Of a DNA stretch of 64,000 nucleotides, positions 124 to 55,628 are shown piece after piece. The notes beneath the pieces were generated by a model that was given only the letters and a program-made list of their open reading frames with translations, made no database searches and was not told the origin of the DNA. The position numbers were made by a program, and so were the translations under genes. The stretch is taken from the NCBI GenBank assembly GCA_964247055.1, contig OZ176053.1:3410001-3474000 (forward strand), read 5' to 3'. Numbering within the stretch: the first letter of the stretch is position 1; each line of letters opens with the position of its first letter. This DNA comes from Paragordius varius (taxonomy: Eukaryota > Animalia > Nematomorpha).

Positions 124-1106
124 CTGAGGATATCGCCTCCCAATCATCTTCATTTTCATCTTGATCGTCTTTATTATTTAAAAGTTTTTCATAAATTTCC
201 TCCACTTCGGGAAAAATATCTAAAAAAACATAAAATTAATTTATTTAAAATTATACAAAATGAGTTGTAAAAAATGTTGATTAACAATTTTGGTATTTTA
301 CTTGGAGAAGAGACAGGACTGACCGGAGTCCATGAATGGTATTGATTGACTTCACTGAAAGTAACACTCTTTCTTGGTTCTATTTATATATAAACATTTG
401 TATATTTTATAAAATATTTATATTATTTTTTTGTATGGTAATATATTGTTGATAATATTAGATTTTAAAATTTCACTTGGCTCAGAAGGTACATCGGGAT
501 GAATTTCCAATCTTTCCCCTTCGTTCTTTTTCTTAAAACAGCAAGAAGATATGCGGCACAGATATCTCCAGCCTGTGATATTAATTATACTTTATGGTTA
601 TAAAGAAAATGAAAATACTGACTTGGAAATTTGAGTGATATAAATAACTGAATTTCGGTCAATGTTAGTAATCAAAATATATATAAAATGATGATTGCCA
701 TCATTTACCCTAAAACTTTTATTGTGGTCAATAAATATTGTCAAGCCAACTTTAACCAAAGAACCAAGTTATTGAAAGTATAAATTTTAGATTTAGTAAA
801 ACCAAAGCTAATTAAACATAGATATAATTGTAAGTTGGCAATAACAGTGTACATTAACAAATCTGTGTTATAAGTTATGTTTTAAACGTCAATCTAAAAT
901 TTTATTCAATTATTTTATTTTTTATTTTCATTTATATCAAAAAGGTTAGATGTATTTAACGAAATATCATTAATATATATTATGAATTTGCTGATTTTTA
1001 TGGAAAATTATGAAAAAAAATGTTATATGTGCATACCCTGACTCTTTTCTTGGGTTTCGCCACCATTTGTCGTTTTAACAGCGAATATCCTTGAAAAAAA
1101 TTTCAT
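124..1106 (-). CDS. Unassigned small-protein family, copy 1 (exons 1-4; the rest runs off the window start)
   Basis: Minus-strand exons 1106-1037, 572-477, 379-302 and 219-124, all GT-AG with phase-1 junctions. Reads MKFFSRIFAVKTTNGGETQEKSQG-WRYLCRISSCCFKKKNEGERLEIHPDVPSEP-KPRKSVTFSEVNQYHSWTPVSPVSSP-NIFPEVEEIYEKLLNNKDDQDENEDDWEAISS. Matches copies 2 and 3 exon for exon, with one in-frame codon deletion in exon 2. Confidence 0.8.
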
Positions 1107-37332: not shown

Positions 37333-39458
37333 ATGAAATTTTTTTCAAGAATATTCACTGTAAAAACGACAAATGGTGGCGAAACCCAAGAGAAGAGTCA
37401 GGGTATGCACATATAACAATTTTTTTCCATAATTTTCCACAAAAACCAGAAAATTAATGATAAACTTTATCAATGATATTTCGTTAAATACATATAACCT
37501 TTTTAAATAAATAAAAATAAATTAATTCAAAATTTTAAAATAGATTAATGTTTAAAACATAACACATAACTTTGATTAGTTGAAAGTTTAATGCTTTTAC
37601 ACTGTTATTGCCAACTTACAATTATATTTATGTTTAATATTAAATAGCTTTGGTTTATAATAAATTTAAAATTTATAATTAACTTAATTTTTTTGTTAGA
37701 AGTTGGCTTGACAATATTTATTGACCACAATAAAAGTTTATAAAGGTAAATGATGGCAATAATCATTTTATATGTACATAATTAATTAATAACATTGACC
37801 GAAAATCAGTTATTTATATTACTTTAAAATTCCAAAAACCGAATCGGTATTTTCATTTTATTTATAACCATAAAGTATATATGTTAATATTACAGGCTGG
37901 AGAAGATATCTATGCTGCATATCTTCTTGTTGTTTGAAGAAGAATAACGAAGGGGGAAGATTGGAAATTAATCCCGATGTACCTTCGGAGCAAAGTGCGA
38001 TTTCAAAATCTAATATTATCAAACACAAAAATAATATAAATATTTAAATAGAAATGTTTGCATATAATTAGAACCAAGAAAAAGTGTCACTTTCAGTGAA
38101 GTCAACCAATACCATTCATGGACTCCCGTCAGTCCTGTCTCTTCTCCAAGTAAAATACCAAAATTATTAATCAACATTTTTTACAACTCATTTTACATAA
38201 TTTTAACTAAATTAATTTTATGTTTTTTAGATATTTTTCCCAAAGTGGAGGAAATTTATGAAAAGTTTTTAAATAATAAAGACGACCAAGATGAAAATGA
38301 AGATGATTGGGAGTCGATATCTTCAGGTGGTTTGTTGTATAAGAAATAAAATCAACGGAAATTGTGAACACAAATATATTTTCGAAAGACAATTATATTT
38401 TTAAAATCTTTGAAATTAAAATAGCTCATCATTTTTATTAAGATTATTCTTAAAGTTTAAATTTGCAATTGATGTTAATTGTGCCAAAACTCATTTTAAG
38501 GTTATAAATAATATAATTTTTTTAGATTCTTTTTCCGAAGTGAATGAAATTTATGCGAAACTTTTTGCTGACGAAGGTGAAGATGATCGGAATTCGATAT
38601 CTACAGGTTATTTTTAATGTTGAGTATTTAGAGGATTTTGCTTAAAAGTGACAAAATGTGTCAATAAAAATTACCATGAAAGTTTAAATTATAGAAAATT
38701 GAAATTTTAGAAATTTTAATATATTTAACATAAAAAAGCGTAATAAGAATATGTGATGTGGTTGAAGCAAAAGGATTGTGTTTGAGGTATCCAAAATATC
38801 AAAAAATGTCATAAAAGTAACGAATCCAAATCCAATATAAAAATAAAGAATCCAAAAAAGCGTTATATAAAAGATTAGTGTGATGTAATGTAAAAAGATA
38901 AATGTAATTGGATGTAAAGAGTGAGTAGATAGGTTTGATTGATTTGTAAGTGTAGGTAGGTGTGGGATGTAATAAATAATGTAAAGAATCCAAATGTATA
39001 AAAAATACAATATATAAATATGAATAGTGTGAATATGGATGTAATGATCTGTAGATGAGATGTATGGTGGAGAGTTTGGATGAGTGTGAAATACAGGTTT
39101 TTAGGCTTAAATAAGATTTTCGACTCATTTTAGTAACAAACTTTTATCATAATTAAATCCGAAATCGCAAATTTTCCCCATATTATGTCACCAATATTTC
39201 CCCAGTTAATTATTGCAAAATAGTAGGGATTGTGTGAAAAAAAAATTTAATACTATTTTGAGGTGATGGGTGTAACCCTAACAATCTCTCTCCTGAAATA
39301 AATTTTCTCTTATACAACTTAATGTATAAATTATGAGGTGTTACTTATTTCTACCATTAACATTTTTAGAAAAAACGGTGGAGAAACCATTGAAAGAATA
39401 TAATGAATATGAAGTTGTGGATTGGAGTTGTCTTTCCACAAGGAATGAGGCGGATTGA
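37333..39458 (+). CDS. Unassigned small-protein family, copy 2 (6 exons, 170 aa; candidate PP1-docking protein)
   Basis: Exons 37333-37402, 37896-37994, 38072-38149, 38231-38326, 38526-38606 and 39370-39458 (70+99+78+96+81+89 = 513 nt), all GT-AG and phase 1. Protein: MKFFSRIFTVKTTNGGETQEKSQGWRRYLCCISSCCLKKNNEGGRLEINPDVPSEQKPRKSVTFSEVNQYHSWTPVSPVSSPNIFPKVEEIYEKFLNNKDDQDENEDDWESISSDSFSEVNEIYAKLFADEGEDDRNSISTEKTVEKPLKEYNEYEVVDWSCLSTRNEAD*. Confidence 0.85.
38750..39090 (-). repeat. Inverted unit of the downstream compositional repeat inserted in intron 5 of copy 2
   Basis: Reverse complement of about 39820-40150 and 50470-50790 (about 85-90% identity by eye); absent from intron 5 of copy 3. 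Confidence 0.85.
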
Positions 39459-39529: not shown

Positions 39530-40640
39530 ACTTATATCTTTTATTATATATTTTGGATTTTTTATGCATTTGATTCCTTTACATATTTGGATTCATTCAA
39601 CTTCTTTATTCCTTTACATCTTTGTCAAACTTATTCTATCTACATCTAACTACATTTCAAACAAATCAAAACCTATCTACTCACTCTTTACATCCAATCA
39701 CATTTTTCTTTCATTACATCACACTCATCCTTTATATAACATTTATGGATTCTTTATTTTTATATTGGATTTGGATTCTTTACTTTTTATGACATTTTTT
39801 GATATTTGGATTGTCACATCTTATACTCATTCAAACTATCCACCATACTCCTCATCTACACATCATTACACCTTCATCATTTATATATTCTATTTTTTAT
39901 ACATTTGGATTCTTTAAACTATTTACATCCCACACCTACCTACATTTACAAATCAAACCCACCTACTCACTCTTTACCTCCAATTACATTTATCTTTTTA
40001 CATCTATATCACACTCATCAATTATTATATAACATTTTTGGATTCTTTATATTTATATTGGATTTGGATTCTTTACTTTTTATGACATTTTTTGATATTT
40101 TGGATACCTCAAACACAACCCTTTTCCTTCAACCACATATCACTTCACACTCATCTCTACACTCTCAACCCTTACACATGTCATCCACACATCATTATTT
40201 ATATACATCATTCAACATTTATATATTTATCATCATACAATTGGATTCTTTATATTTTCATCATTTTTTGAATCCTCATTTTTTATGACATTTGGATTTT
40301 GGATTATTTTTTCTTTTTTGGATTTGGATTTTTTATACCCTCACACTCAACCTCCCATCTCTACTCAAATACTTCACAAACTCACATGCACTCATCTCTA
40401 TTACAACTTTACCTACATACTCTCATATATTATTATTGCTTTTATATAGAAAAATTTGGATTCAATTTTTATTGAATTTTGGATTACTTTTTTTATTTGA
40501 TGGATTTGGATTCTTCGATATATACCTCACTCTCTAACACTCAACCCTCAAACTCACATACACACATGCACACACCTTTATCATCAACCATCAATTTATT
40601 TAACGCCACACTTTGTATCATAACTCATCACATATTACAT
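39530..40640 (+). repeat. Strand-asymmetric tandem macro-repeat (units of about 200-300 bp) 3' of copy 2
   Basis: G-poor C/A blocks (CAAATCAAACCTATCTACTCACTCTTTACATCCAAT) alternate with T-rich blocks (ATATTGGATTTGGATTCTTTACTTTTTATGACATTTTT). Confidence 0.85.
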
Positions 40641-47865: not shown

Positions 47866-49797
47866 ATGAAATTTTTTGCAAGGATATTCAATTTGAAAAC
47901 GACGAGTTGTGGTGAAACCCAAGAGAAGGGAAAGGGTATGCATATATATCAATTCTTTTCCAAAATTCAGCAAATTAATGAGAAAATTTATCAAAGATAT
48001 TTCTTTAAATACAACTAACCTTTTTTCATAATGAAAAATAAAATAATTCAAAATTTTAAAATTTTAGATTGATGTTTCAACATAATTTATAACACAGATT
48101 AGTTGGAATTGGAAGTTTAATGATTTACTGTTACAAATTAAAATTATATTTATGTTTAATATTAAGTAGTATTGGTAGATTAGATTCTGATTGGCTTATT
48201 TCTTTTGTTAAAATTTGGCTTAATATTTATTGACCACAATATAAGTTTAAAGTTAAATGATGGCAATAATCATTTTATATATATTTTAAATACTAACATT
48301 GACCGAAATTCAGTTATTTATATTACTTTAAAATTCCCAAGTCGGTTTTCATTTTATTTATAACCATAAAGTAAAAATGTTAAATTTTACAGGCTGGAGA
48401 AGATATCTGTGCTGCATATCTTCTTGCTGTTTTAAGAAAAAGAACAAAGGGGAAAGATTGGAAAGTAATCCTGAGGTACCTTCGGAGCCAAGTGAGATTT
48501 TGAAATCTAATATTATCAACAACATATTACCATACACTAAAATAAGCTAAATATTTTATAAAATACAAATGTTTATATATAAATAGAACCAAAAAAGAGT
48601 GTCACTTTCAGTGAAGTCAATCAATACCATTCATGGACTCCGGTCAGTCCTGTCTCTTCTCCATGTAAAATACCAAAATTATTAATCAACATTTTTTACA
48701 GCTCATTTTGTATAGTTTTTAATAAAATTTTATATCTTTAAGATACTTTTCCCGAAGTGGAGGAAATTTATGAAAAACTTCTAAATAATAAAGATGACCA
48801 AGTTGAAAATGAAGATGATTGGGAGTCGATATCTTCAGGTAAAATTATCGGACATAATGTGAACACAAATATTTTTTCGAAAGACAATCATATTTTTAAA
48901 ATCTTGATTTTAATTGAAATAGCTCATCATTTTTATTTAGATTATTCTTAAAGTTTAAATTTGCAATTGATATAAATTGTGCCAAAACTCATAAGGTTGT
49001 AAATAATATAATTTAATTTTTTTAGATTCTTTTTCCGAAGTGGAGGAAATTTATGCGAAACTTTTTGCTGACGATGGTGAAGATGATCTGAAGTCGATAT
49101 CTTCAGGTTTTTTTATTTTTATTGAGTATTAAGAGGATTTTTAAATGTTAGCATTCGCTGGTTATGATCTAATACAAAATATGTCTAAATTTATATAAAT
49201 TGATATAAAAATAATAAATACCGTTGAAAGCTTATATTATAAGAAATTAATCTGTGTTGATAATTTTAAAAATATATTTTACTGTAAAAAGTCTAAATAA
49301 GATATGTGAAAAATATATCCTTTTGTCGATAAAATCTTGATGGAAAAATGTATAAGATTTAGGCTCAAAGTGTTGGGAATTAGGCGTTATTTAAGTATAA
49401 CAACCTATTATCATAATTCCGAAATCGCAAATTTCGCCCATATAATTTTAATAATATTTCTCCAGTTAATTATTCTAAAATTTATAAAAATATATGCATT
49501 ATTTACGTATAAGCTTAACAGCCTCACATTTTAAAACCCGTAAAATGGATTAGCGCTTTCTAAAACACAAAAAAACCGGGATTGTGCGATAAATAATTTT
49601 AATACTATTTTGAAGTGATTGATCTAACACTAAACTTAAACTCTTTTCTCTAATCAATTTTCTATTCAACTATGAGGTGTTACTTATTTATACCATTAAC
49701 ATTTTTAGAAAAAACTGTGGAGAAACCATTGAAAGAGTATAATGAATATGAAGTTGTGGATTGGAGTTATCTTTCTCCGAGGAATGAGGCGGATTGA
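47866..49797 (+). CDS. Unassigned small-protein family, copy 3 (6 exons, 170 aa)
   Basis: Exons 47866-47935, 48393-48491, 48587-48664, 48743-48838, 49026-49106 and 49709-49797, the same lengths as copy 2, with an open frame. Reads MKFFARIFNLKTTSCGETQEKGKGWRRYLCCISSCCFKKKNKGERLESNPEVPSEPKPKKSVTFSEVNQYHSWTPVSPVSSP...VVDWSYLSPRNEAD*. Confidence 0.85.
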
Positions 49798-49879: not shown

Positions 49880-51320
49880 CGTTTATTATACATTTTGGAT
49901 TTTTTATGCATTTTATTCCTTTACTAATTTTGATTCATTCTACTTCTTTATTCCTTTATAACTAAACTTTCCAACATCTACCTACACCTCAAACAAATTA
50001 AACCTATCTATACACTCTTCACATCCAATTACATTTATCTTTTTACATTACATCACACACTTTTATAAAACACTTTTGGATTCTTTATTTTTATATTGGA
50101 TTTGGATTCTTTACTTTTTATGACATTTTTTGATTTTTGGATCGTCACATCTCATACTCAAACCCCTTATCTCACACTCATTCAAACTCTCCACCATACT
50201 TCTCATCTACACATCATTACACCCATAATCACACTATTCATCCTTTGTATATTCTAATTTTTATACATTTGGATTCTTTAAATACTTACATCCCACACCT
50301 ACCTACACTTCAAACAAATCAAACCTATCTACACACGCTTCACATCCAAACACATTTATCTTTTTACATTACATCACACTCATCTTTTATATAACATTTT
50401 TGGATTCTTTATTTTTATATTGGATTTGGATTCTTTACTTTTTATGCATTTTTTGATTTTTGGATATCTCATACTCATTCAAACTGTCCACCATACATCT
50501 CATCTACACATCATTACACCATATTCACACTATTCATCATTTATATATTCTATTTTGAATACATTTGGATTCTTTAAACTACTTACATCCCACACCTACC
50601 TACACTTACAAATCAAACCTATCTACTCACTCCTTACATCCAATCACAATTATCTCTTTAAATTATATCATTCTCATCTTTTAACTAACACTTTTGGGGA
50701 TTATTTATTTTTATATTGGATTTGGATTCTTTACCTTTTATGTCATGTTTTTGATTTTTGGATACCTCAAACACAACCCTTTTTCTTTAACTACATATCA
50801 CTTCACACTCATCTCTACACTCTCAACCCTTACACATGTCAACATCAACATATTACCTTTTATCCACATCATTTGTATATTCTTTATCATACAATTGGAT
50901 TCTATATATTTTCATCATTTTTTGGAACATCATTTTTTATGACATTTGGATTTTGGATTATTTTTTATTTTTTGGATTTGGATTTTTTTACCTCATATTC
51001 AACCTCCCATCCTTTATCCTTCACTCAAATACTTAACAAACTCACATGCACTCATCTTTATTACAACATTACCTACTCAACTCAAACTTCTCATATATCT
51101 ATATTATCATTGCTTTTATATAAAAAAATTTGGATTTATTTTTTATTAAATCTTGAATTACTTTTTTGTTTGATGAATTTGTTCCATATACGTCTCACTC
51201 TCTAACCCTCAAACCTCAAACTCACATACACACACGCAAACACATTTACCATCAAACCTCCTTTTATTCAACGCCATACTTTATATCATAACTCATCCCA
51301 TACTACATATTAAATTGTTA
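49880..51320 (+). repeat. Strand-asymmetric tandem macro-repeat 3' of copy 3 (about one unit longer than in copy 2)
   Basis: Same alternating C/A-rich and TTGGATT-rich blocks as 39530-40640. Confidence 0.85.
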
Positions 51321-51658: not shown

Positions 51659-53773
51659 TTAAGCTTGATATCGGTCGGGTGGCTTTCGGGATCTAATCGG
51701 GTACCGGCGAGTTGTGGTAGGAGAAGTGTCACTTGTTTGCACAGGAGTATTCTCACTTGAAGGCGCACTTTCTGATTTCGGATTCTCCTGGATGTTTTCA
51801 GGGGTTCTTATTTCATGTTCCGTGGGATGTTTTCGGAGGTTATTATCATTGTTGTTTAAGTTGTTGGTTAAGTTTTTAGTCTTTTCCTCACTGTTATTAT
51901 CATTGTTGTTTAAGTTTTTAGTCTTTTCCTCACTTCTCCCTTCTTCTCCTTCGGCCGACCAATCCATGCGATTCCTTAATTGATCAGCATGTTTGCGGAT
52001 GATTTTGCCATTGTCGTTGACATTGTACGATAACCATCCCGTTCTGTCGACGATTTGTCCCTCCCTCCAACCAGAACACAATTCATTCTTGATATATACT
52101 TTTTGCCCCTTTTCAAACTCCTGCGGAATGTCGGGAGTATCCATGAACTCGTTGGGTTTCGTTTTCATCCATGTTAATGGGCTTTGCATAGTTCTTTTTA
52201 AAAACAAATGCGCGGGAGTCTCCTTCGTAGAACTGTGATGCGTGTTTCGGTAAGCCCATAAGATTTGGTTTAATCTTCGTACTGGGTCTGCGGAAAGGTC
52301 TGCGGAAAGTGGGGTTGACATCGAATAATGATTTTTTAGAGTGTAAATTACCCTCTCTACCAACCCATTTGTTCGGGGGTGGTAGGGAGCTGATGTTACG
52401 TGTTTTATATTAGAGGAAGCTAAAGTTCTCTCAAACTCCCCCGATTTAAAATAAGAGCCGTTATCAGTAACCACCATTTTTGGGTACCCATACCGGCAAA
52501 AACAGGTTTCCAAAAACTTAAGGATATTACCGGTATTCACAGAACGTAACGTTTCTACCTCCACCCAGCGGGTGCAATGATCAATTAGTACCACCCAGTA
52601 TAAATTGTCAATGGGTCCAGCGATATCTAGGTGGAGCCGTTCCCATATGGTTGTATTCTCGTTCCATTGATAGGTGGGATTTTCGGGTATATTTGGGCGC
52701 AGCCTTTGACAATTTTGGCAACTACGCACCCATTTATCGATATCTTGGCTCAACCCGGGCCAATAAACCTTTTCACGGCTTAATAGTTTCATGGCTTGTA
52801 TTCCCGGATGGCCACTATGCAGGTATCTTAAAATATCTGGCTTAATTTTGTTCGGGATTATTACCCGATCTCCCACAAATAATAGACCGTATGCATCCTC
52901 AATTTCATTTTTTATTGCTATGAAAGGCTTGACCAGGGGGTCCGTCCAATTATTAGACCTTAGGGCTACTTTTAACTTTGCTATAGTAGGATCCTTCATA
53001 GACTCTTGATAGATAATTTCTCTATTTAAATTTAATTCGTTGGACCAAATCAAATGAACATTGCTACTTTCATCATCTTTCTCAAACGCCATCGGCTCCT
53101 GGTTTTCAATGGGGAGTCTCGATAGGCAGTCAGCTATGTTTTCTGTACCAGGGTGATATTCTATGTTGAAATCGAATACCGATGTTCTAGTTATCCAGCG
53201 TACTAGTTTACAATTATTAATTTTACTTAGATCTCTTTGAGGCCCAAATAGTTTCACTAGAGGTTTGTGGTCCGTTTGTATTATAAATTTCCTGCCATAC
53301 AAAAAGGTTTTAAACTTCTCTAACGCTATTAGGATAGATTTTGCTTCTCGCTCAATTACTGAATAGTTTCCTTCAGCCTGAGAGCATTTTTTTGACGTGT
53401 AGGCGATCGGGCGATTACCCGCTGTTGTTCTATGTGATAAAATAGCACCGTATCCCGACATTGACGCGTCGGTTTCCAAGACTATAGGTAGTTTGGGATT
53501 ATACGGATGCAAGGAACTACTCTGGCAGATCAAGTCTTTAGCTTTTTTGAATATCGAATCATGCGTTAGCGTCCAACACCATTTTTGTTTGTTACCTGCT
53601 AATTTATGTAGTTCTCCCATTAAAATGCTTAGAAGGGATGAATTTTGCATGAAAATTAAGTAAACCCAAAAATGATCTAAGAGTGGTTTTGTTGGTCGGG
53701 GTCGGGCACTCTTGGATGGCTTTAATTTTGTTTGGGGAGGGCTTAATGCAATTTTCAGAAATAATGTGACCAA
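51659..53773 (-). CDS. Gypsy pol, second part: RNase H and integrase (frameshifted from the upstream ORF)
   Basis: LETDASMSGYGAIL, DHKPL, integrase zinc finger HSGHPG..CQNC, core WERLHLDIAGP/VTDNG/NGLVER. The homologous frame starts near 53635. Confidence 0.9.
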   Translation of the reverse strand: MVTLFLKIALSPPQTKLKPSKSARPRPTKPLLDHFWVYLIFMQNSSLLSILMGELHKLAGNKQKWCWTLTHDSIFKKAKDLICQSSSLHPYNPKLPIVLETDASMSGYGAILSHRTTAGNRPIAYTSKKCSQAEGNYSVIEREAKSILIALEKFKTFLYGRKFIIQTDHKPLVKLFGPQRDLSKINNCKLVRWITRTSVFDFNIEYHPGTENIADCLSRLPIENQEPMAFEKDDESSNVHLIWSNELNLNREIIYQESMKDPTIAKLKVALRSNNWTDPLVKPFIAIKNEIEDAYGLLFVGDRVIIPNKIKPDILRYLHSGHPGIQAMKLLSREKVYWPGLSQDIDKWVRSCQNCQRLRPNIPENPTYQWNENTTIWERLHLDIAGPIDNLYWVVLIDHCTRWVEVETLRSVNTGNILKFLETCFCRYGYPKMVVTDNGSYFKSGEFERTLASSNIKHVTSAPYHPRTNGLVERVIYTLKNHYSMSTPLSADLSADPVRRLNQILWAYRNTHHSSTKETPAHLFLKRTMQSPLTWMKTKPNEFMDTPDIPQEFEKGQKVYIKNELCSGWREGQIVDRTGWLSYNVNDNGKIIRKHADQLRNRMDWSAEGEEGRSEEKTKNLNNNDNNSEEKTKNLTNNLNNNDNNLRKHPTEHEIRTPENIQENPKSESAPSSENTPVQTSDTSPTTTRRYPIRSRKPPDRYQA

Positions 53774-55628
53774 GATATTCTACAGATGGTTGAAAAAGTT
53801 TTATTTTATCTTTGCGCAATTTTAATCCCATTGTCTCCAATTTGGTAAATACCTTTATTAGGTTGTCCTTGTGCTTTGTCTCGGTTTCTCCTGTCACGAT
53901 AACGTCATCTAAATAAACGGCTGTACCTGCGCAATCTTTTAATAACTCGTCCATTATTTGTTGAAAGAAACTGGGGGCGCAATTTAACCCGAAAGGCAAT
54001 CGTTTATACTTATAAAACCCCTTATGTGTCGAAATTGTTAGTAAGTGCTGACTATCTGGGTCTACTGGAATTTGAAAATAGGCGTCTTTCAAATCTAGTG
54101 TCGAGAAAGATTTGCCGAAGGAAATTTTTGAGATGAGGTCGTCAAAGGTTGGGATTATGTATTGCGGCGGTTTTATGTGTGGATTTATACTTATTTTAAA
54201 ATCCGCGCATATTCTAAGCTCTTTATTAGGTTTTATAATATTTACAGTAGGGCTGGACCAAACGATTCTAGTCTTTTTTGGATCAACAGGCTCAATTATA
54301 TCCAGTTTTACCAATCTATTTATCTCATCCTCCACTTTGCTTTGTAATGATAGTGGCACCCTTCTACTTGGAAAAATTCTACCACAATTATTATTACTTA
54401 AAAACACTTTAATCGGGTCGCCCTTCCAGCAACCAAGGCCCTCAGAAAATAACTTGCTAAATTTGTTATATATATCATATGAAGATAAGTTATTTATTAT
54501 TACATGATTGGGTAATTTTAAATTAAATTGTTTTATCCAGTCCATTCCAAATATTGATGGTAAGTTGTTGTTTATAATAAAGCACTCTAGAATGTGCGTT
54601 CTTTTATCTAATTCAACCTGTAATTTGCATTTACCTAATGTTTTTATACGATTATTATTGTATGCATGTATGAAAATATTATTGTTATCAAAATCTAGTG
54701 CTGGCTTGCCTAGACGGCACCAGTTTTTATAATTTATGATGGAAATATCGGCACCCGTATCAAAAATCATTTCAATATGAATATTATTTATTTTAGGAAC
54801 AATTTGGGTTTTTTTTGTCTTATTAAAAAGGGAATATGTTTTAAACGTTACCTTACAACATCGAGCAAAGTGGTTTGAACGATGGCATTTATAACATTCT
54901 TTCCCATAGGCAGGGCAATGTCCAAACGAATGAGTCGTCCCACATTTTGTGCAGGTTCGTCGGTTATTATTACTATGGTTGGTTTTTGATTGGTGAAGTG
55001 TGGCTATTTCGTTTATTTCACCATTACTACTGTGGTTCTTATTATTGTTACTTCTATTATCATTATCAATATTGATGGACAGCACTTCTGTATTCGTTAG
55101 TCCATCTCGTGCCTTCTCATGTGATAAGGCAATATTTACCACCGTATTTAGAGAAACGGGAGCCCCGTTTTCTAAAGCTTCTGGGAACCGTGTGAATAGT
55201 TCCATTTCCACGGCTTGCTCGTCTAACCCGGCGATGAATACATCTCTGATGTGCTCGTCAATGTTTGACGAGAACCGGCAGTGGATGGCCATTTGCTTAA
55301 CTCTTAACAGGAATTCTGTGAACGTTTCCATTCTCCCCCTCTTCATTTTAATTAAATCAAAACGCGACGAAAAAATATTCCTTGAGGGGGAGAAGATTTT
55401 TATACCGGCGTTTAATAGATCTGGGAATGGTATGTCGTCTATTGCTTGTGGATAGAAATAATTTTCAATTTTATTAATATTTTCGATTCCTCCGAAAGCC
55501 AACAAACATGCTTTCATATTTTCATCGGTGGCTGCGACATTCTTGACCTCCAAATTGCGTTTAATATATGTAATATAATTTGTAAACTCAACATTTGGAT
55601 TAAAACATGATAAATTAATTTTTTCCAT
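53604..55628 (-). CDS. Gypsy gag-protease-reverse transcriptase ORF
   Basis: Two zinc knuckles (CTKCGTTHSFGHC, CYKCHRSNHFARCC), protease FDTGAD, RT motifs LRICADF, DLKDAYFQ, LPFG and YLDD. Confidence 0.95.
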   Translation of the reverse strand: MEKINLSCFNPNVEFTNYITYIKRNLEVKNVAATDENMKACLLAFGGIENINKIENYFYPQAIDDIPFPDLLNAGIKIFSPSRNIFSSRFDLIKMKRGRMETFTEFLLRVKQMAIHCRFSSNIDEHIRDVFIAGLDEQAVEMELFTRFPEALENGAPVSLNTVVNIALSHEKARDGLTNTEVLSINIDNDNRSNNNKNHSSNGEINEIATLHQSKTNHSNNNRRTCTKCGTTHSFGHCPAYGKECYKCHRSNHFARCCKVTFKTYSLFNKTKKTQIVPKINNIHIEMIFDTGADISIINYKNWCRLGKPALDFDNNNIFIHAYNNNRIKTLGKCKLQVELDKRTHILECFIINNNLPSIFGMDWIKQFNLKLPNHVIINNLSSYDIYNKFSKLFSEGLGCWKGDPIKVFLSNNNCGRIFPSRRVPLSLQSKVEDEINRLVKLDIIEPVDPKKTRIVWSSPTVNIIKPNKELRICADFKISINPHIKPPQYIIPTFDDLISKISFGKSFSTLDLKDAYFQIPVDPDSQHLLTISTHKGFYKYKRLPFGLNCAPSFFQQIMDELLKDCAGTAVYLDDVIVTGETETKHKDNLIKVFTKLETMGLKLRKDKIKLFQPSVEYLGHIISENCIKPSPNKIKAIQECPTPTNKTTLRSFLGLLNFHAKFIPSKHFNGRTT

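Follow-up and report, generated by a model that had tools for sequence, protein, structure and literature searches.

A tandemly expanded, unannotated gene family with a candidate PP1-docking module in Paragordius varius

The question raised by a 64,000-nucleotide stretch of contig 4 of the Paragordius varius genome (C4:3410001-3474000, contig OZ176053.1; hereafter the window) is whether a set of small exons within it represents a genuine gene family and, if so, how the encoded proteins might act. In this study, we analyzed these exons, and in particular those of the copy at 37333-39458 (copy E), in the context of the whole assembly (110.6 Mb, 44 contigs); the GC content of the window is about 25%. 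A preliminary description of the window, made from its letters without database searches, had proposed that three paralogs there encode membrane-tethered regulatory subunits of protein phosphatase 1 (PP1). Our analyses demonstrate that the intact copies in the cluster are real genes under moderate purifying selection. As to function, we place at about one half the probability that they encode tandemly expanded, lineage-restricted small cytosolic proteins in which exon 3 would dock PP1, an S-acyl group would serve as an anchor and Trp motifs would engage partners.

Copy E, on the plus strand, is composed of six GT-AG exons of 70, 99, 78, 96, 81 and 89 nucleotides (nt), whose boundaries were both read and scripted and whose junctions are all in phase 1; the 513-nt coding sequence specifies a protein of 170 amino acids (aa). 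The AG acceptors, GT donors and phases verified in this copy bear out the small phase-1 exons described earlier. Its start, M-K-F-F, is common to copy E and a deep paralog (L039) at C4:12.67 Mb. The exons and motifs of copy E are as follows.

37333-37402, plus strand: exon 1, with the ATG; begins M-K-F-F, ends in phase 1 and has a GT donor
37896-37994, plus strand: exon 2, a basic and hydrophobic segment with a Cys cluster
37898-37942, plus strand: Cys-cluster segment W-R-R-Y-L-C-C-I-S-S-C-C-L-K-K of exon 2, a candidate S-acylation membrane anchor
38072-38149, plus strand: exon 3, with the docking-like module; pN 0.026 versus pS 0.107
38080-38136, plus strand: module K-S-V-T-F-S-E-V-N-Q-Y-H-S-W-T-P-V-S-P of exon 3
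38231-38326, plus strand: exon 4, a repeat unit comprising a short helix-like segment and an acidic Trp motif
38299-38319, plus strand: acidic Trp motif E-D-D-W-E-S-I of exon 4
38526-38606, plus strand: exon 5, a degenerate version of the exon 4 repeat
39370-39458, plus strand: exon 6, with a second acidic Trp motif, then the stop codon
39399-39434, plus strand: acidic Trp motif Y-N-E-Y-E-V-V-D-W-S-C-L of exon 6, kept in L039

The residue composition (E 14%, S 12.5%, K 9%, D 7%, N 6%, P 5%) fits an unstructured protein, and the family proteins appear disorder-like in this respect. Intron 3 (38150-38230, 81 nt) is free of stops only in copies E and C, and in copy E its openness creates a 93-codon frame (38068-38346) that spans exons 3 and 4. 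A retained-intron isoform is unlikely, because intron 3 holds stops in the other copies.

Copies were located with the exons as queries, by blastn within the window and by a DNA search of the assembly, and 40 kb of sequence upstream of the window was included. Six intact copies (A to F) lie between C4:3385432 and 3459797 in an 80-kb cluster on contig 4, four of them on the minus strand before the housekeeping genes of the window, and the other two beyond those genes on the plus strand. The recent expansion proposed earlier is supported. The cluster also holds a decayed copy, G (C4:3381744-3382916), which has in-frame stops in two exons, lacks exons 1 and 2 and has the V of the motif changed to F, and a lone exon 6 fragment is found 1.4 Mb from the cluster at C4:4886897. 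The three copies in the window had all been placed correctly, as blastn confirmed, at 1106-124 (minus), 37333-39458 (plus) and 47866-49797 (plus). For the minus-strand copy (D) the location was right, but the gene extends past the window start and actually has seven exons and 202 aa. Copies B, C and D each carry an extra repeat exon, 4b, a duplicate of exon 4, giving seven exons and proteins of 200-202 aa. The exons of the other two window copies are the following.

1037-1106, 477-572, 302-379 and 124-219, minus strand: copy D exons 1 to 4
C4:3408777-3409825, before the window start, minus strand: copy D exons 4b, 5 and 6
47866-47935, 48393-48491, 48587-48664, 48743-48838, 49026-49106 and 49709-49797, plus strand: the six exons of copy F, 170 aa

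Exon 3 is nearly invariant among the three window copies. The earlier tally of four synonymous differences and one R/K difference holds, although a further change of N to Y, in the codon split across the exon 3/4 junction of copy F, had been missed. The single coding indel among these copies is, as reported, in frame: the minus-strand copy lacks 3 nt in exon 2. At the Trp position of the repeat in exon 5, copy F has Leu and the other five copies have Arg. The exon 5 of copy B (C4:3397741-3397821) has its GT donor replaced by AT; this exon may be skipped without a change of frame, since all internal exons are phase 1-1, or it may be read through to a nearby stop.

The coding status of the cluster copies was assessed from their divergence. 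Conservation is beyond chance, because six frames are open while the introns differ by 8-16% (aligned introns 1-3, versus 5-9% for the exons). Variable alignment columns fall at codon positions 1, 2 and 3 in numbers of 25, 20 and 42, respectively, so that variation at third positions is roughly double that at either of the others. Pairwise ratios of non-synonymous to synonymous rates (dN/dS; Nei-Gojobori, counted per exon and then summed over exons) ranged from 0.19 to 1.03 among the six intact copies and were mostly 0.2-0.6. By parsimony there were 36 synonymous events on 96 sites and 59 non-synonymous events on 393 sites (omega 0.40), and the observed 59 versus 36 departs from the neutral expectation of 80% non-synonymous with a binomial p of 2.7e-5. 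This check among the copies upholds the purifying selection that had been proposed. The most constrained exons are exon 3 (pN/pS 0.25), exon 4 (0.20) and exon 6 (0.19).

These values bear directly on the view that the copies are non-functional, being recent segmental duplicates kept alike by youth or gene conversion, or the cargo of a mobile element. One pair, A versus C, does have a dN/dS of 1.03, copy B is without its exon 5 donor, and no annotated protein exists in any collection, the large search described below lacking even a self match. Against this stand the omega and its p value, exons about half as diverged as introns, and the finding that a truly unconstrained copy shows stops. In addition, L039, at 48% identity and 9 Mb from the cluster, keeps all phases and motifs. 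Nor are the genes part of a transposon: Pfam searches of the family exons found no transposon domain, and the copies are clustered with conserved flanks rather than dispersed. We therefore regard a non-functional origin of the open frames as very unlikely.

The family extends well beyond the cluster. Deep paralogs were sought with individual exons as queries in six-frame searches of the assembly, which gave weak exon 3 matches on contig 3 and at C4:12.67 Mb, and the loci were then read and modelled. About 11 further genes, more diverged and outside the cluster, were found to have the same exon and phase design. The three-member family described earlier is real, but it is one part of a set that comprises six intact cluster copies, a decayed copy, a fragment and these distant paralogs. 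L039 has five exons, all in phase 1, encodes 169 aa with 48% identity to copy E across the exons that align, and keeps the Cys cluster (C-C-L-S-C-C), the exon 3 module and both Trp motifs (D-D-W and Y-N-E-Y-E-x-x-D-W-S-x-L). A second subfamily consists of eight genes on contig 3 (C3:1.61-1.94 Mb; L036:1617-3112, minus strand, and seven sister loci) with five phase-1 exons, 174 aa and two modules, each of which opens its own exon. Its gene model ends in E-T-R-V-stop, a terminus resembling class I PDZ ligands. A spacing of about 39 kb between four of the C3 copies suggests large segmental duplications as their source. Two further genes form a subfamily at C4:11.13/11.14 Mb. The C3 and C4:11.13-Mb genes have a single Cys and two docking modules and are without exon 4-type repeats, whereas the focal genes have one module and two or three acidic Trp repeats. 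In focal and sister subfamilies alike, the motif exon starts at an A-A-C-C acceptor and the proteins are of ~170 aa.

The extent of the family was also evident from a DNA pattern for F-x-[DE]-x3-Y-x2-W-T-P, which matched 25 sites in the genome versus one for the reversed control. Seven of these sites are in the focal cluster, 14 in the eight C3 genes, two at C4:11.13/11.14 Mb and one in L039; the remaining site contains a stop and was rejected as a chance match. The superfamily comprises ~17 intact genes plus two decayed pieces. Exon 6 of copy E (39370-39458) shares its beginning, E-K-T-V-x-K, with the second docking exon in the C3 genes (L036:1720-1905), and the two align without gaps over ~18 residues. 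Possibly, exon 6 is a decayed second module, with V-V-D-W matching Y-F-T-W.

Searches for relatives were done exon by exon, one HMMER query being the 93-aa open frame at 38068-38346, which includes intron 3. No exon of the focal gene or of three distant paralogs had a Pfam match at E <= 10. PDB sequences gave only chance matches to focal exon 3 and the C3 motif exon (designed Kelch-like repeats, fusolin), and a word-based protein search with a 155-aa C3 open frame returned seven candidates, none scoring. HMMER against 1.84 billion representatives gave only two matches, to internal repeats of proteins of 2.6-3.2 thousand aa. Both were rejected as spurious, since one alignment crosses the intron-derived residues and the other lies mostly within them. 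As no self match appeared either, that collection has no annotation of the gene. By these searches the family is an orphan, lineage-restricted and unannotated, as had been anticipated, where lineage-restricted means that no predicted protein anywhere matches, the DNA searched being that of this genome alone.

A possible link to PP1 came from the ESM atlas. The top cluster for the C3 motif exon (score 0.84) consists of viral 71-aa proteins and has PF10488 (PP1c_bdg) in 29% of its members, which we consider a weak lead to PP1. PF10488 itself had no match in any exon of the four subfamilies at E <= 10, and a six-frame search of the genome with it was likewise without a match, which is weak evidence as control genomes were equally silent.

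The stronger case for PP1 is in the module. All members have in common the core K-x-V-x-F-x-[ED]-x3-[YF]-aromatic-x-W-T-P, and the basic residue, V, F, the acidic residue at +2, the aromatics at +6/+7, W at +9 and T-P are invariant across subfamilies. On pattern matching only, every family member has [YF]-[HYF] at +6/+7 and W at +9. Copy C matches the RVxF core pattern [KR]-x(0,1)-[VI]-{P}-[FW] with K-C-V-T-F and the other five intact copies match it with K-S-V-T-F, and the deep paralogs have the forms K-K-V-R-F, K-R-V-V-F, R-T-V-R-F and K-R-V-T-F. The [RK]-x-V-x-F motif noticed earlier is present, and its positions are kept across the deep paralogs. The phosphorylatable Thr within it is not conserved family-wide: the x position is R, V or T, with T only in the focal subfamily and in one module of the C4:11.13-Mb genes.

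The general PP1 motif, used by 90% of solved PP1 holoenzymes, is RVxF followed by PhiPhi[xF]; an RV[S/T]F that is phosphorylated no longer binds PP1 (PMC9813921). In RRP1B, K-V-T-F is followed by PhiPhi at +7/+8 and Phe at +10 (PMC9813921). In Ki-67 and RepoMan the PhiPhi pair is also at +7/+8, with the anchored Phe at +9, and the RVxF form of RepoMan is R-V-T-F (PMC5005033). The layout of the module, as read from the alignments, fits within this published range. A partner for it is plausibly encoded in the genome, because four loci match PF16891, an N-terminal domain present in PPP-family phosphatases. Overall, we judge the odds to be about even that docking of PP1 is what the module does; it is the best available mechanism and is better supported than the preliminary description could know.

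Several results weigh against docking of PP1, and they are best considered together with the alternative that the family is real while the exon 3 module binds something else, its likeness to RVxF being coincidental. Other candidate readers would be a proline-directed kinase, a Pin1/WW-type reader of the T-P and S-P sites, or a lineage-specific protein. In simulations of random 170-aa sequences with the composition of the family, the bare RVxF motif occurred in 36%. Because it is so common by chance, the case for PP1 rests on the conservation of the PP1-contacting positions. The tail W-T-P-x-S-P, which is as invariant as V and F, is specific to the family and occurs in no published PP1 motif, and two modules per protein, as in the C3 and C4:11.13-Mb subfamilies, are unusual for PP1 regulators. 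Pfam models of PP1-binding proteins had no match, and focal exon 3 gave no usable match in the ESM atlas. PhiPhi motifs, moreover, can hardly be recognized when only the sequence is available (PMC9813921). It is thus conceivable that the module binds something other than PP1. On the other side, its invariant basic residue, V, F and aromatics at +6/+7 and +9 are the positions that contact PP1 in solved complexes. The strict motif arose by chance in just 2.4% of the random sequences and the extended one in 0.7%, the latter with a pattern defined post hoc from sequences already seen. A partner other than PP1 is a possible explanation of the module, but less probable than PP1 docking.

Two points of the same kind concern the putative membrane anchor. 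Exon 2 is the least constrained exon, with a pN/pS of 0.85 that is close to neutral, and in copies A and D one of its Cys residues is replaced by Arg. The Cys cluster pointed out earlier is, for its part, kept in L039. In exon 2, C-C-I-S-S-C-C is flanked by W-R-R-Y-L and [FL]-K-K, and the number of Cys residues within the cluster is 3 to 4. Cys residues beside basic and hydrophobic ones in proteins without a signal peptide or transmembrane segment are a usual feature of S-acylation sites, and palmitoylation of the cluster is plausible. A signal peptide, as of a secreted effector, was rejected by eye, the N-terminus being without a hydrophobic core.

The acidic Trp motifs raise a further alternative, namely that they are the main elements of the proteins, as LC3-interacting region (LIR) motifs for Atg8/LC3, W-acidic motifs for kinesin light chain or Arp2/3-type D-D-W motifs, in membrane adaptors for autophagy or transport in which PP1 would be secondary or absent. 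In the LIR consensus, acidic residues precede a [WFY]-x-x-[LIV] core. The cluster copies have such a core in exons 4, 4b and 6, and both E-D-D-W-E-S-I and V-D-W-S-C-L match it. In addition, exons 4 and 6 are constrained like exon 3, and exon duplication has raised the number of motifs in copies B, C and D. However, in L039 the exon 4 core is broken (D-D-W-D-L-T), although that of exon 6 is kept (W-S-S-L), and the exon 5 repeat is without Trp in all six copies, yet retained. The motifs also resemble W-acidic and D-D-W motifs, and with several unrelated classes fitting equally and none specifically supported, no single reader can be assigned from the sequences. We consider it improbable that these motifs are the primary function. 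Among other short motifs, MyPhoNE, SILK, FFAT and B56 LxxIxE were checked by eye and rejected; LxxIxE is matched by F-[PS]-E-V-E-E in the cluster copies, but L039 has no such match.

Returning to PP1 docking, the mechanism that we propose is of proteins built from symmetric phase-1 exons with one short linear motif per exon. Exon 3 would dock the PP1 catalytic subunit, with K-x-V-x-F in the RVxF groove, the +6/+7 aromatics in the PhiPhi groove and the +9 Trp in a neighboring aromatic pocket. The Thr of the motif, in the focal subfamily only, and the adjoining T-P and S-P sites would make docking sensitive to phosphorylation. The Cys cluster of exon 2 would be S-acylated and anchor the complex at a membrane. 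A second partner or substrate would be recruited by the acidic Trp motifs, of which there are two or three, their number having changed by duplication of phase 1-1 exons. More tentatively, and with a good deal less confidence than in docking itself, the ~19 members may be phylum-restricted, membrane-anchored multivalent PP1 scaffolds that arose de novo from motif-bearing phase-1 exons, in which exon duplication tunes the number of modules and Trp motifs, and which would provide a host-manipulating parasite lineage with a toolkit for retargeting PP1.

Two kinds of repetitive DNA were noted in the window. A C/A-rich repeat of ~296 bp, specific to the cluster, occurs at the following positions.

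38774-39093, minus strand: inverted, in intron 5 of copy E
39642-40117, plus strand: direct copies in tandem, in the 3' flank of copy E
49970-50775, plus strand: in tandem, 3' of copy F

The last exon of copy E is bracketed by the inverted repeats of ~300 bp formed by the intron copy and the copies in the 3' flank. The repeat was considered as a family-wide 3' element and rejected, as it is absent beside L039 and L040. The second is a Ty3/gypsy-type long terminal repeat (LTR) retroelement, whose pol region (51659-55628, minus strand) has two overlapping open frames, one for protease and reverse transcriptase (53604-55628) and the other for RNase H and integrase (51659-53773). The GC content of the pol region is 33-40% versus 25% around it, and the element is separate from the gene family.

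If the module does bind PP1, the family would be a clean case of young orphan PP1 regulators whose evolution, by tandem gene duplication and duplication of symmetric exons, is readable directly from the genome. It would also mean that a whole family of small-exon genes has been overlooked by standard gene finders in a poorly studied phylum, and experiments on how motifs combine in PP1 targeting could draw on natural variants among the paralogs, which differ in having one or two modules and two or three Trp motifs. If it does not, the module would represent a new, strongly conserved motif of 17 residues.

Known PP1 regulators provide the closest comparison. NIPP1, RRP1B, Ki-67/RepoMan, PNUTS and spinophilin likewise have basic-x-V-x-F, then, after 5 residues, a hydrophobic or aromatic pair and an aromatic two positions further on. 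The Thr at the x position in the focal family is shared with the R-V-T-F of RepoMan (PMC5005033). In regulators of the RVxF-PhiPhi[xF] type the surrounding sequence is similarly of low complexity, with many Ser, Pro and acidic residues. NIPP1 also has R-V-T-F. Outside the motif, these regulators have no homology to the family, whose aromatic is a Trp at +9 as opposed to Phe at +9 or +10, and whose T-P-x-S-P tail is invariant and has no equivalent in published PP1 motifs. With regard to the PPP1R15/GADD34 type (PF10488), which includes the small viral DP71L, the family shows no match to the PF10488 hidden Markov model and no recognizable eIF2alpha-recruiting region, but these proteins are, like those of the family, small and have K-V-x-F-x-E followed by aromatics. 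For the putative anchor, GAP-43, the SNAP-25 linker and cysteine-string protein are examples of small S-acylated proteins anchored to membranes. The family is not homologous to GAP-43, SNAP-25 or cysteine-string protein, and has 3-4 Cys residues in the cluster and one in the sister subfamilies, but it is like them in having a run of Cys residues near the N-terminus among basic and hydrophobic residues.

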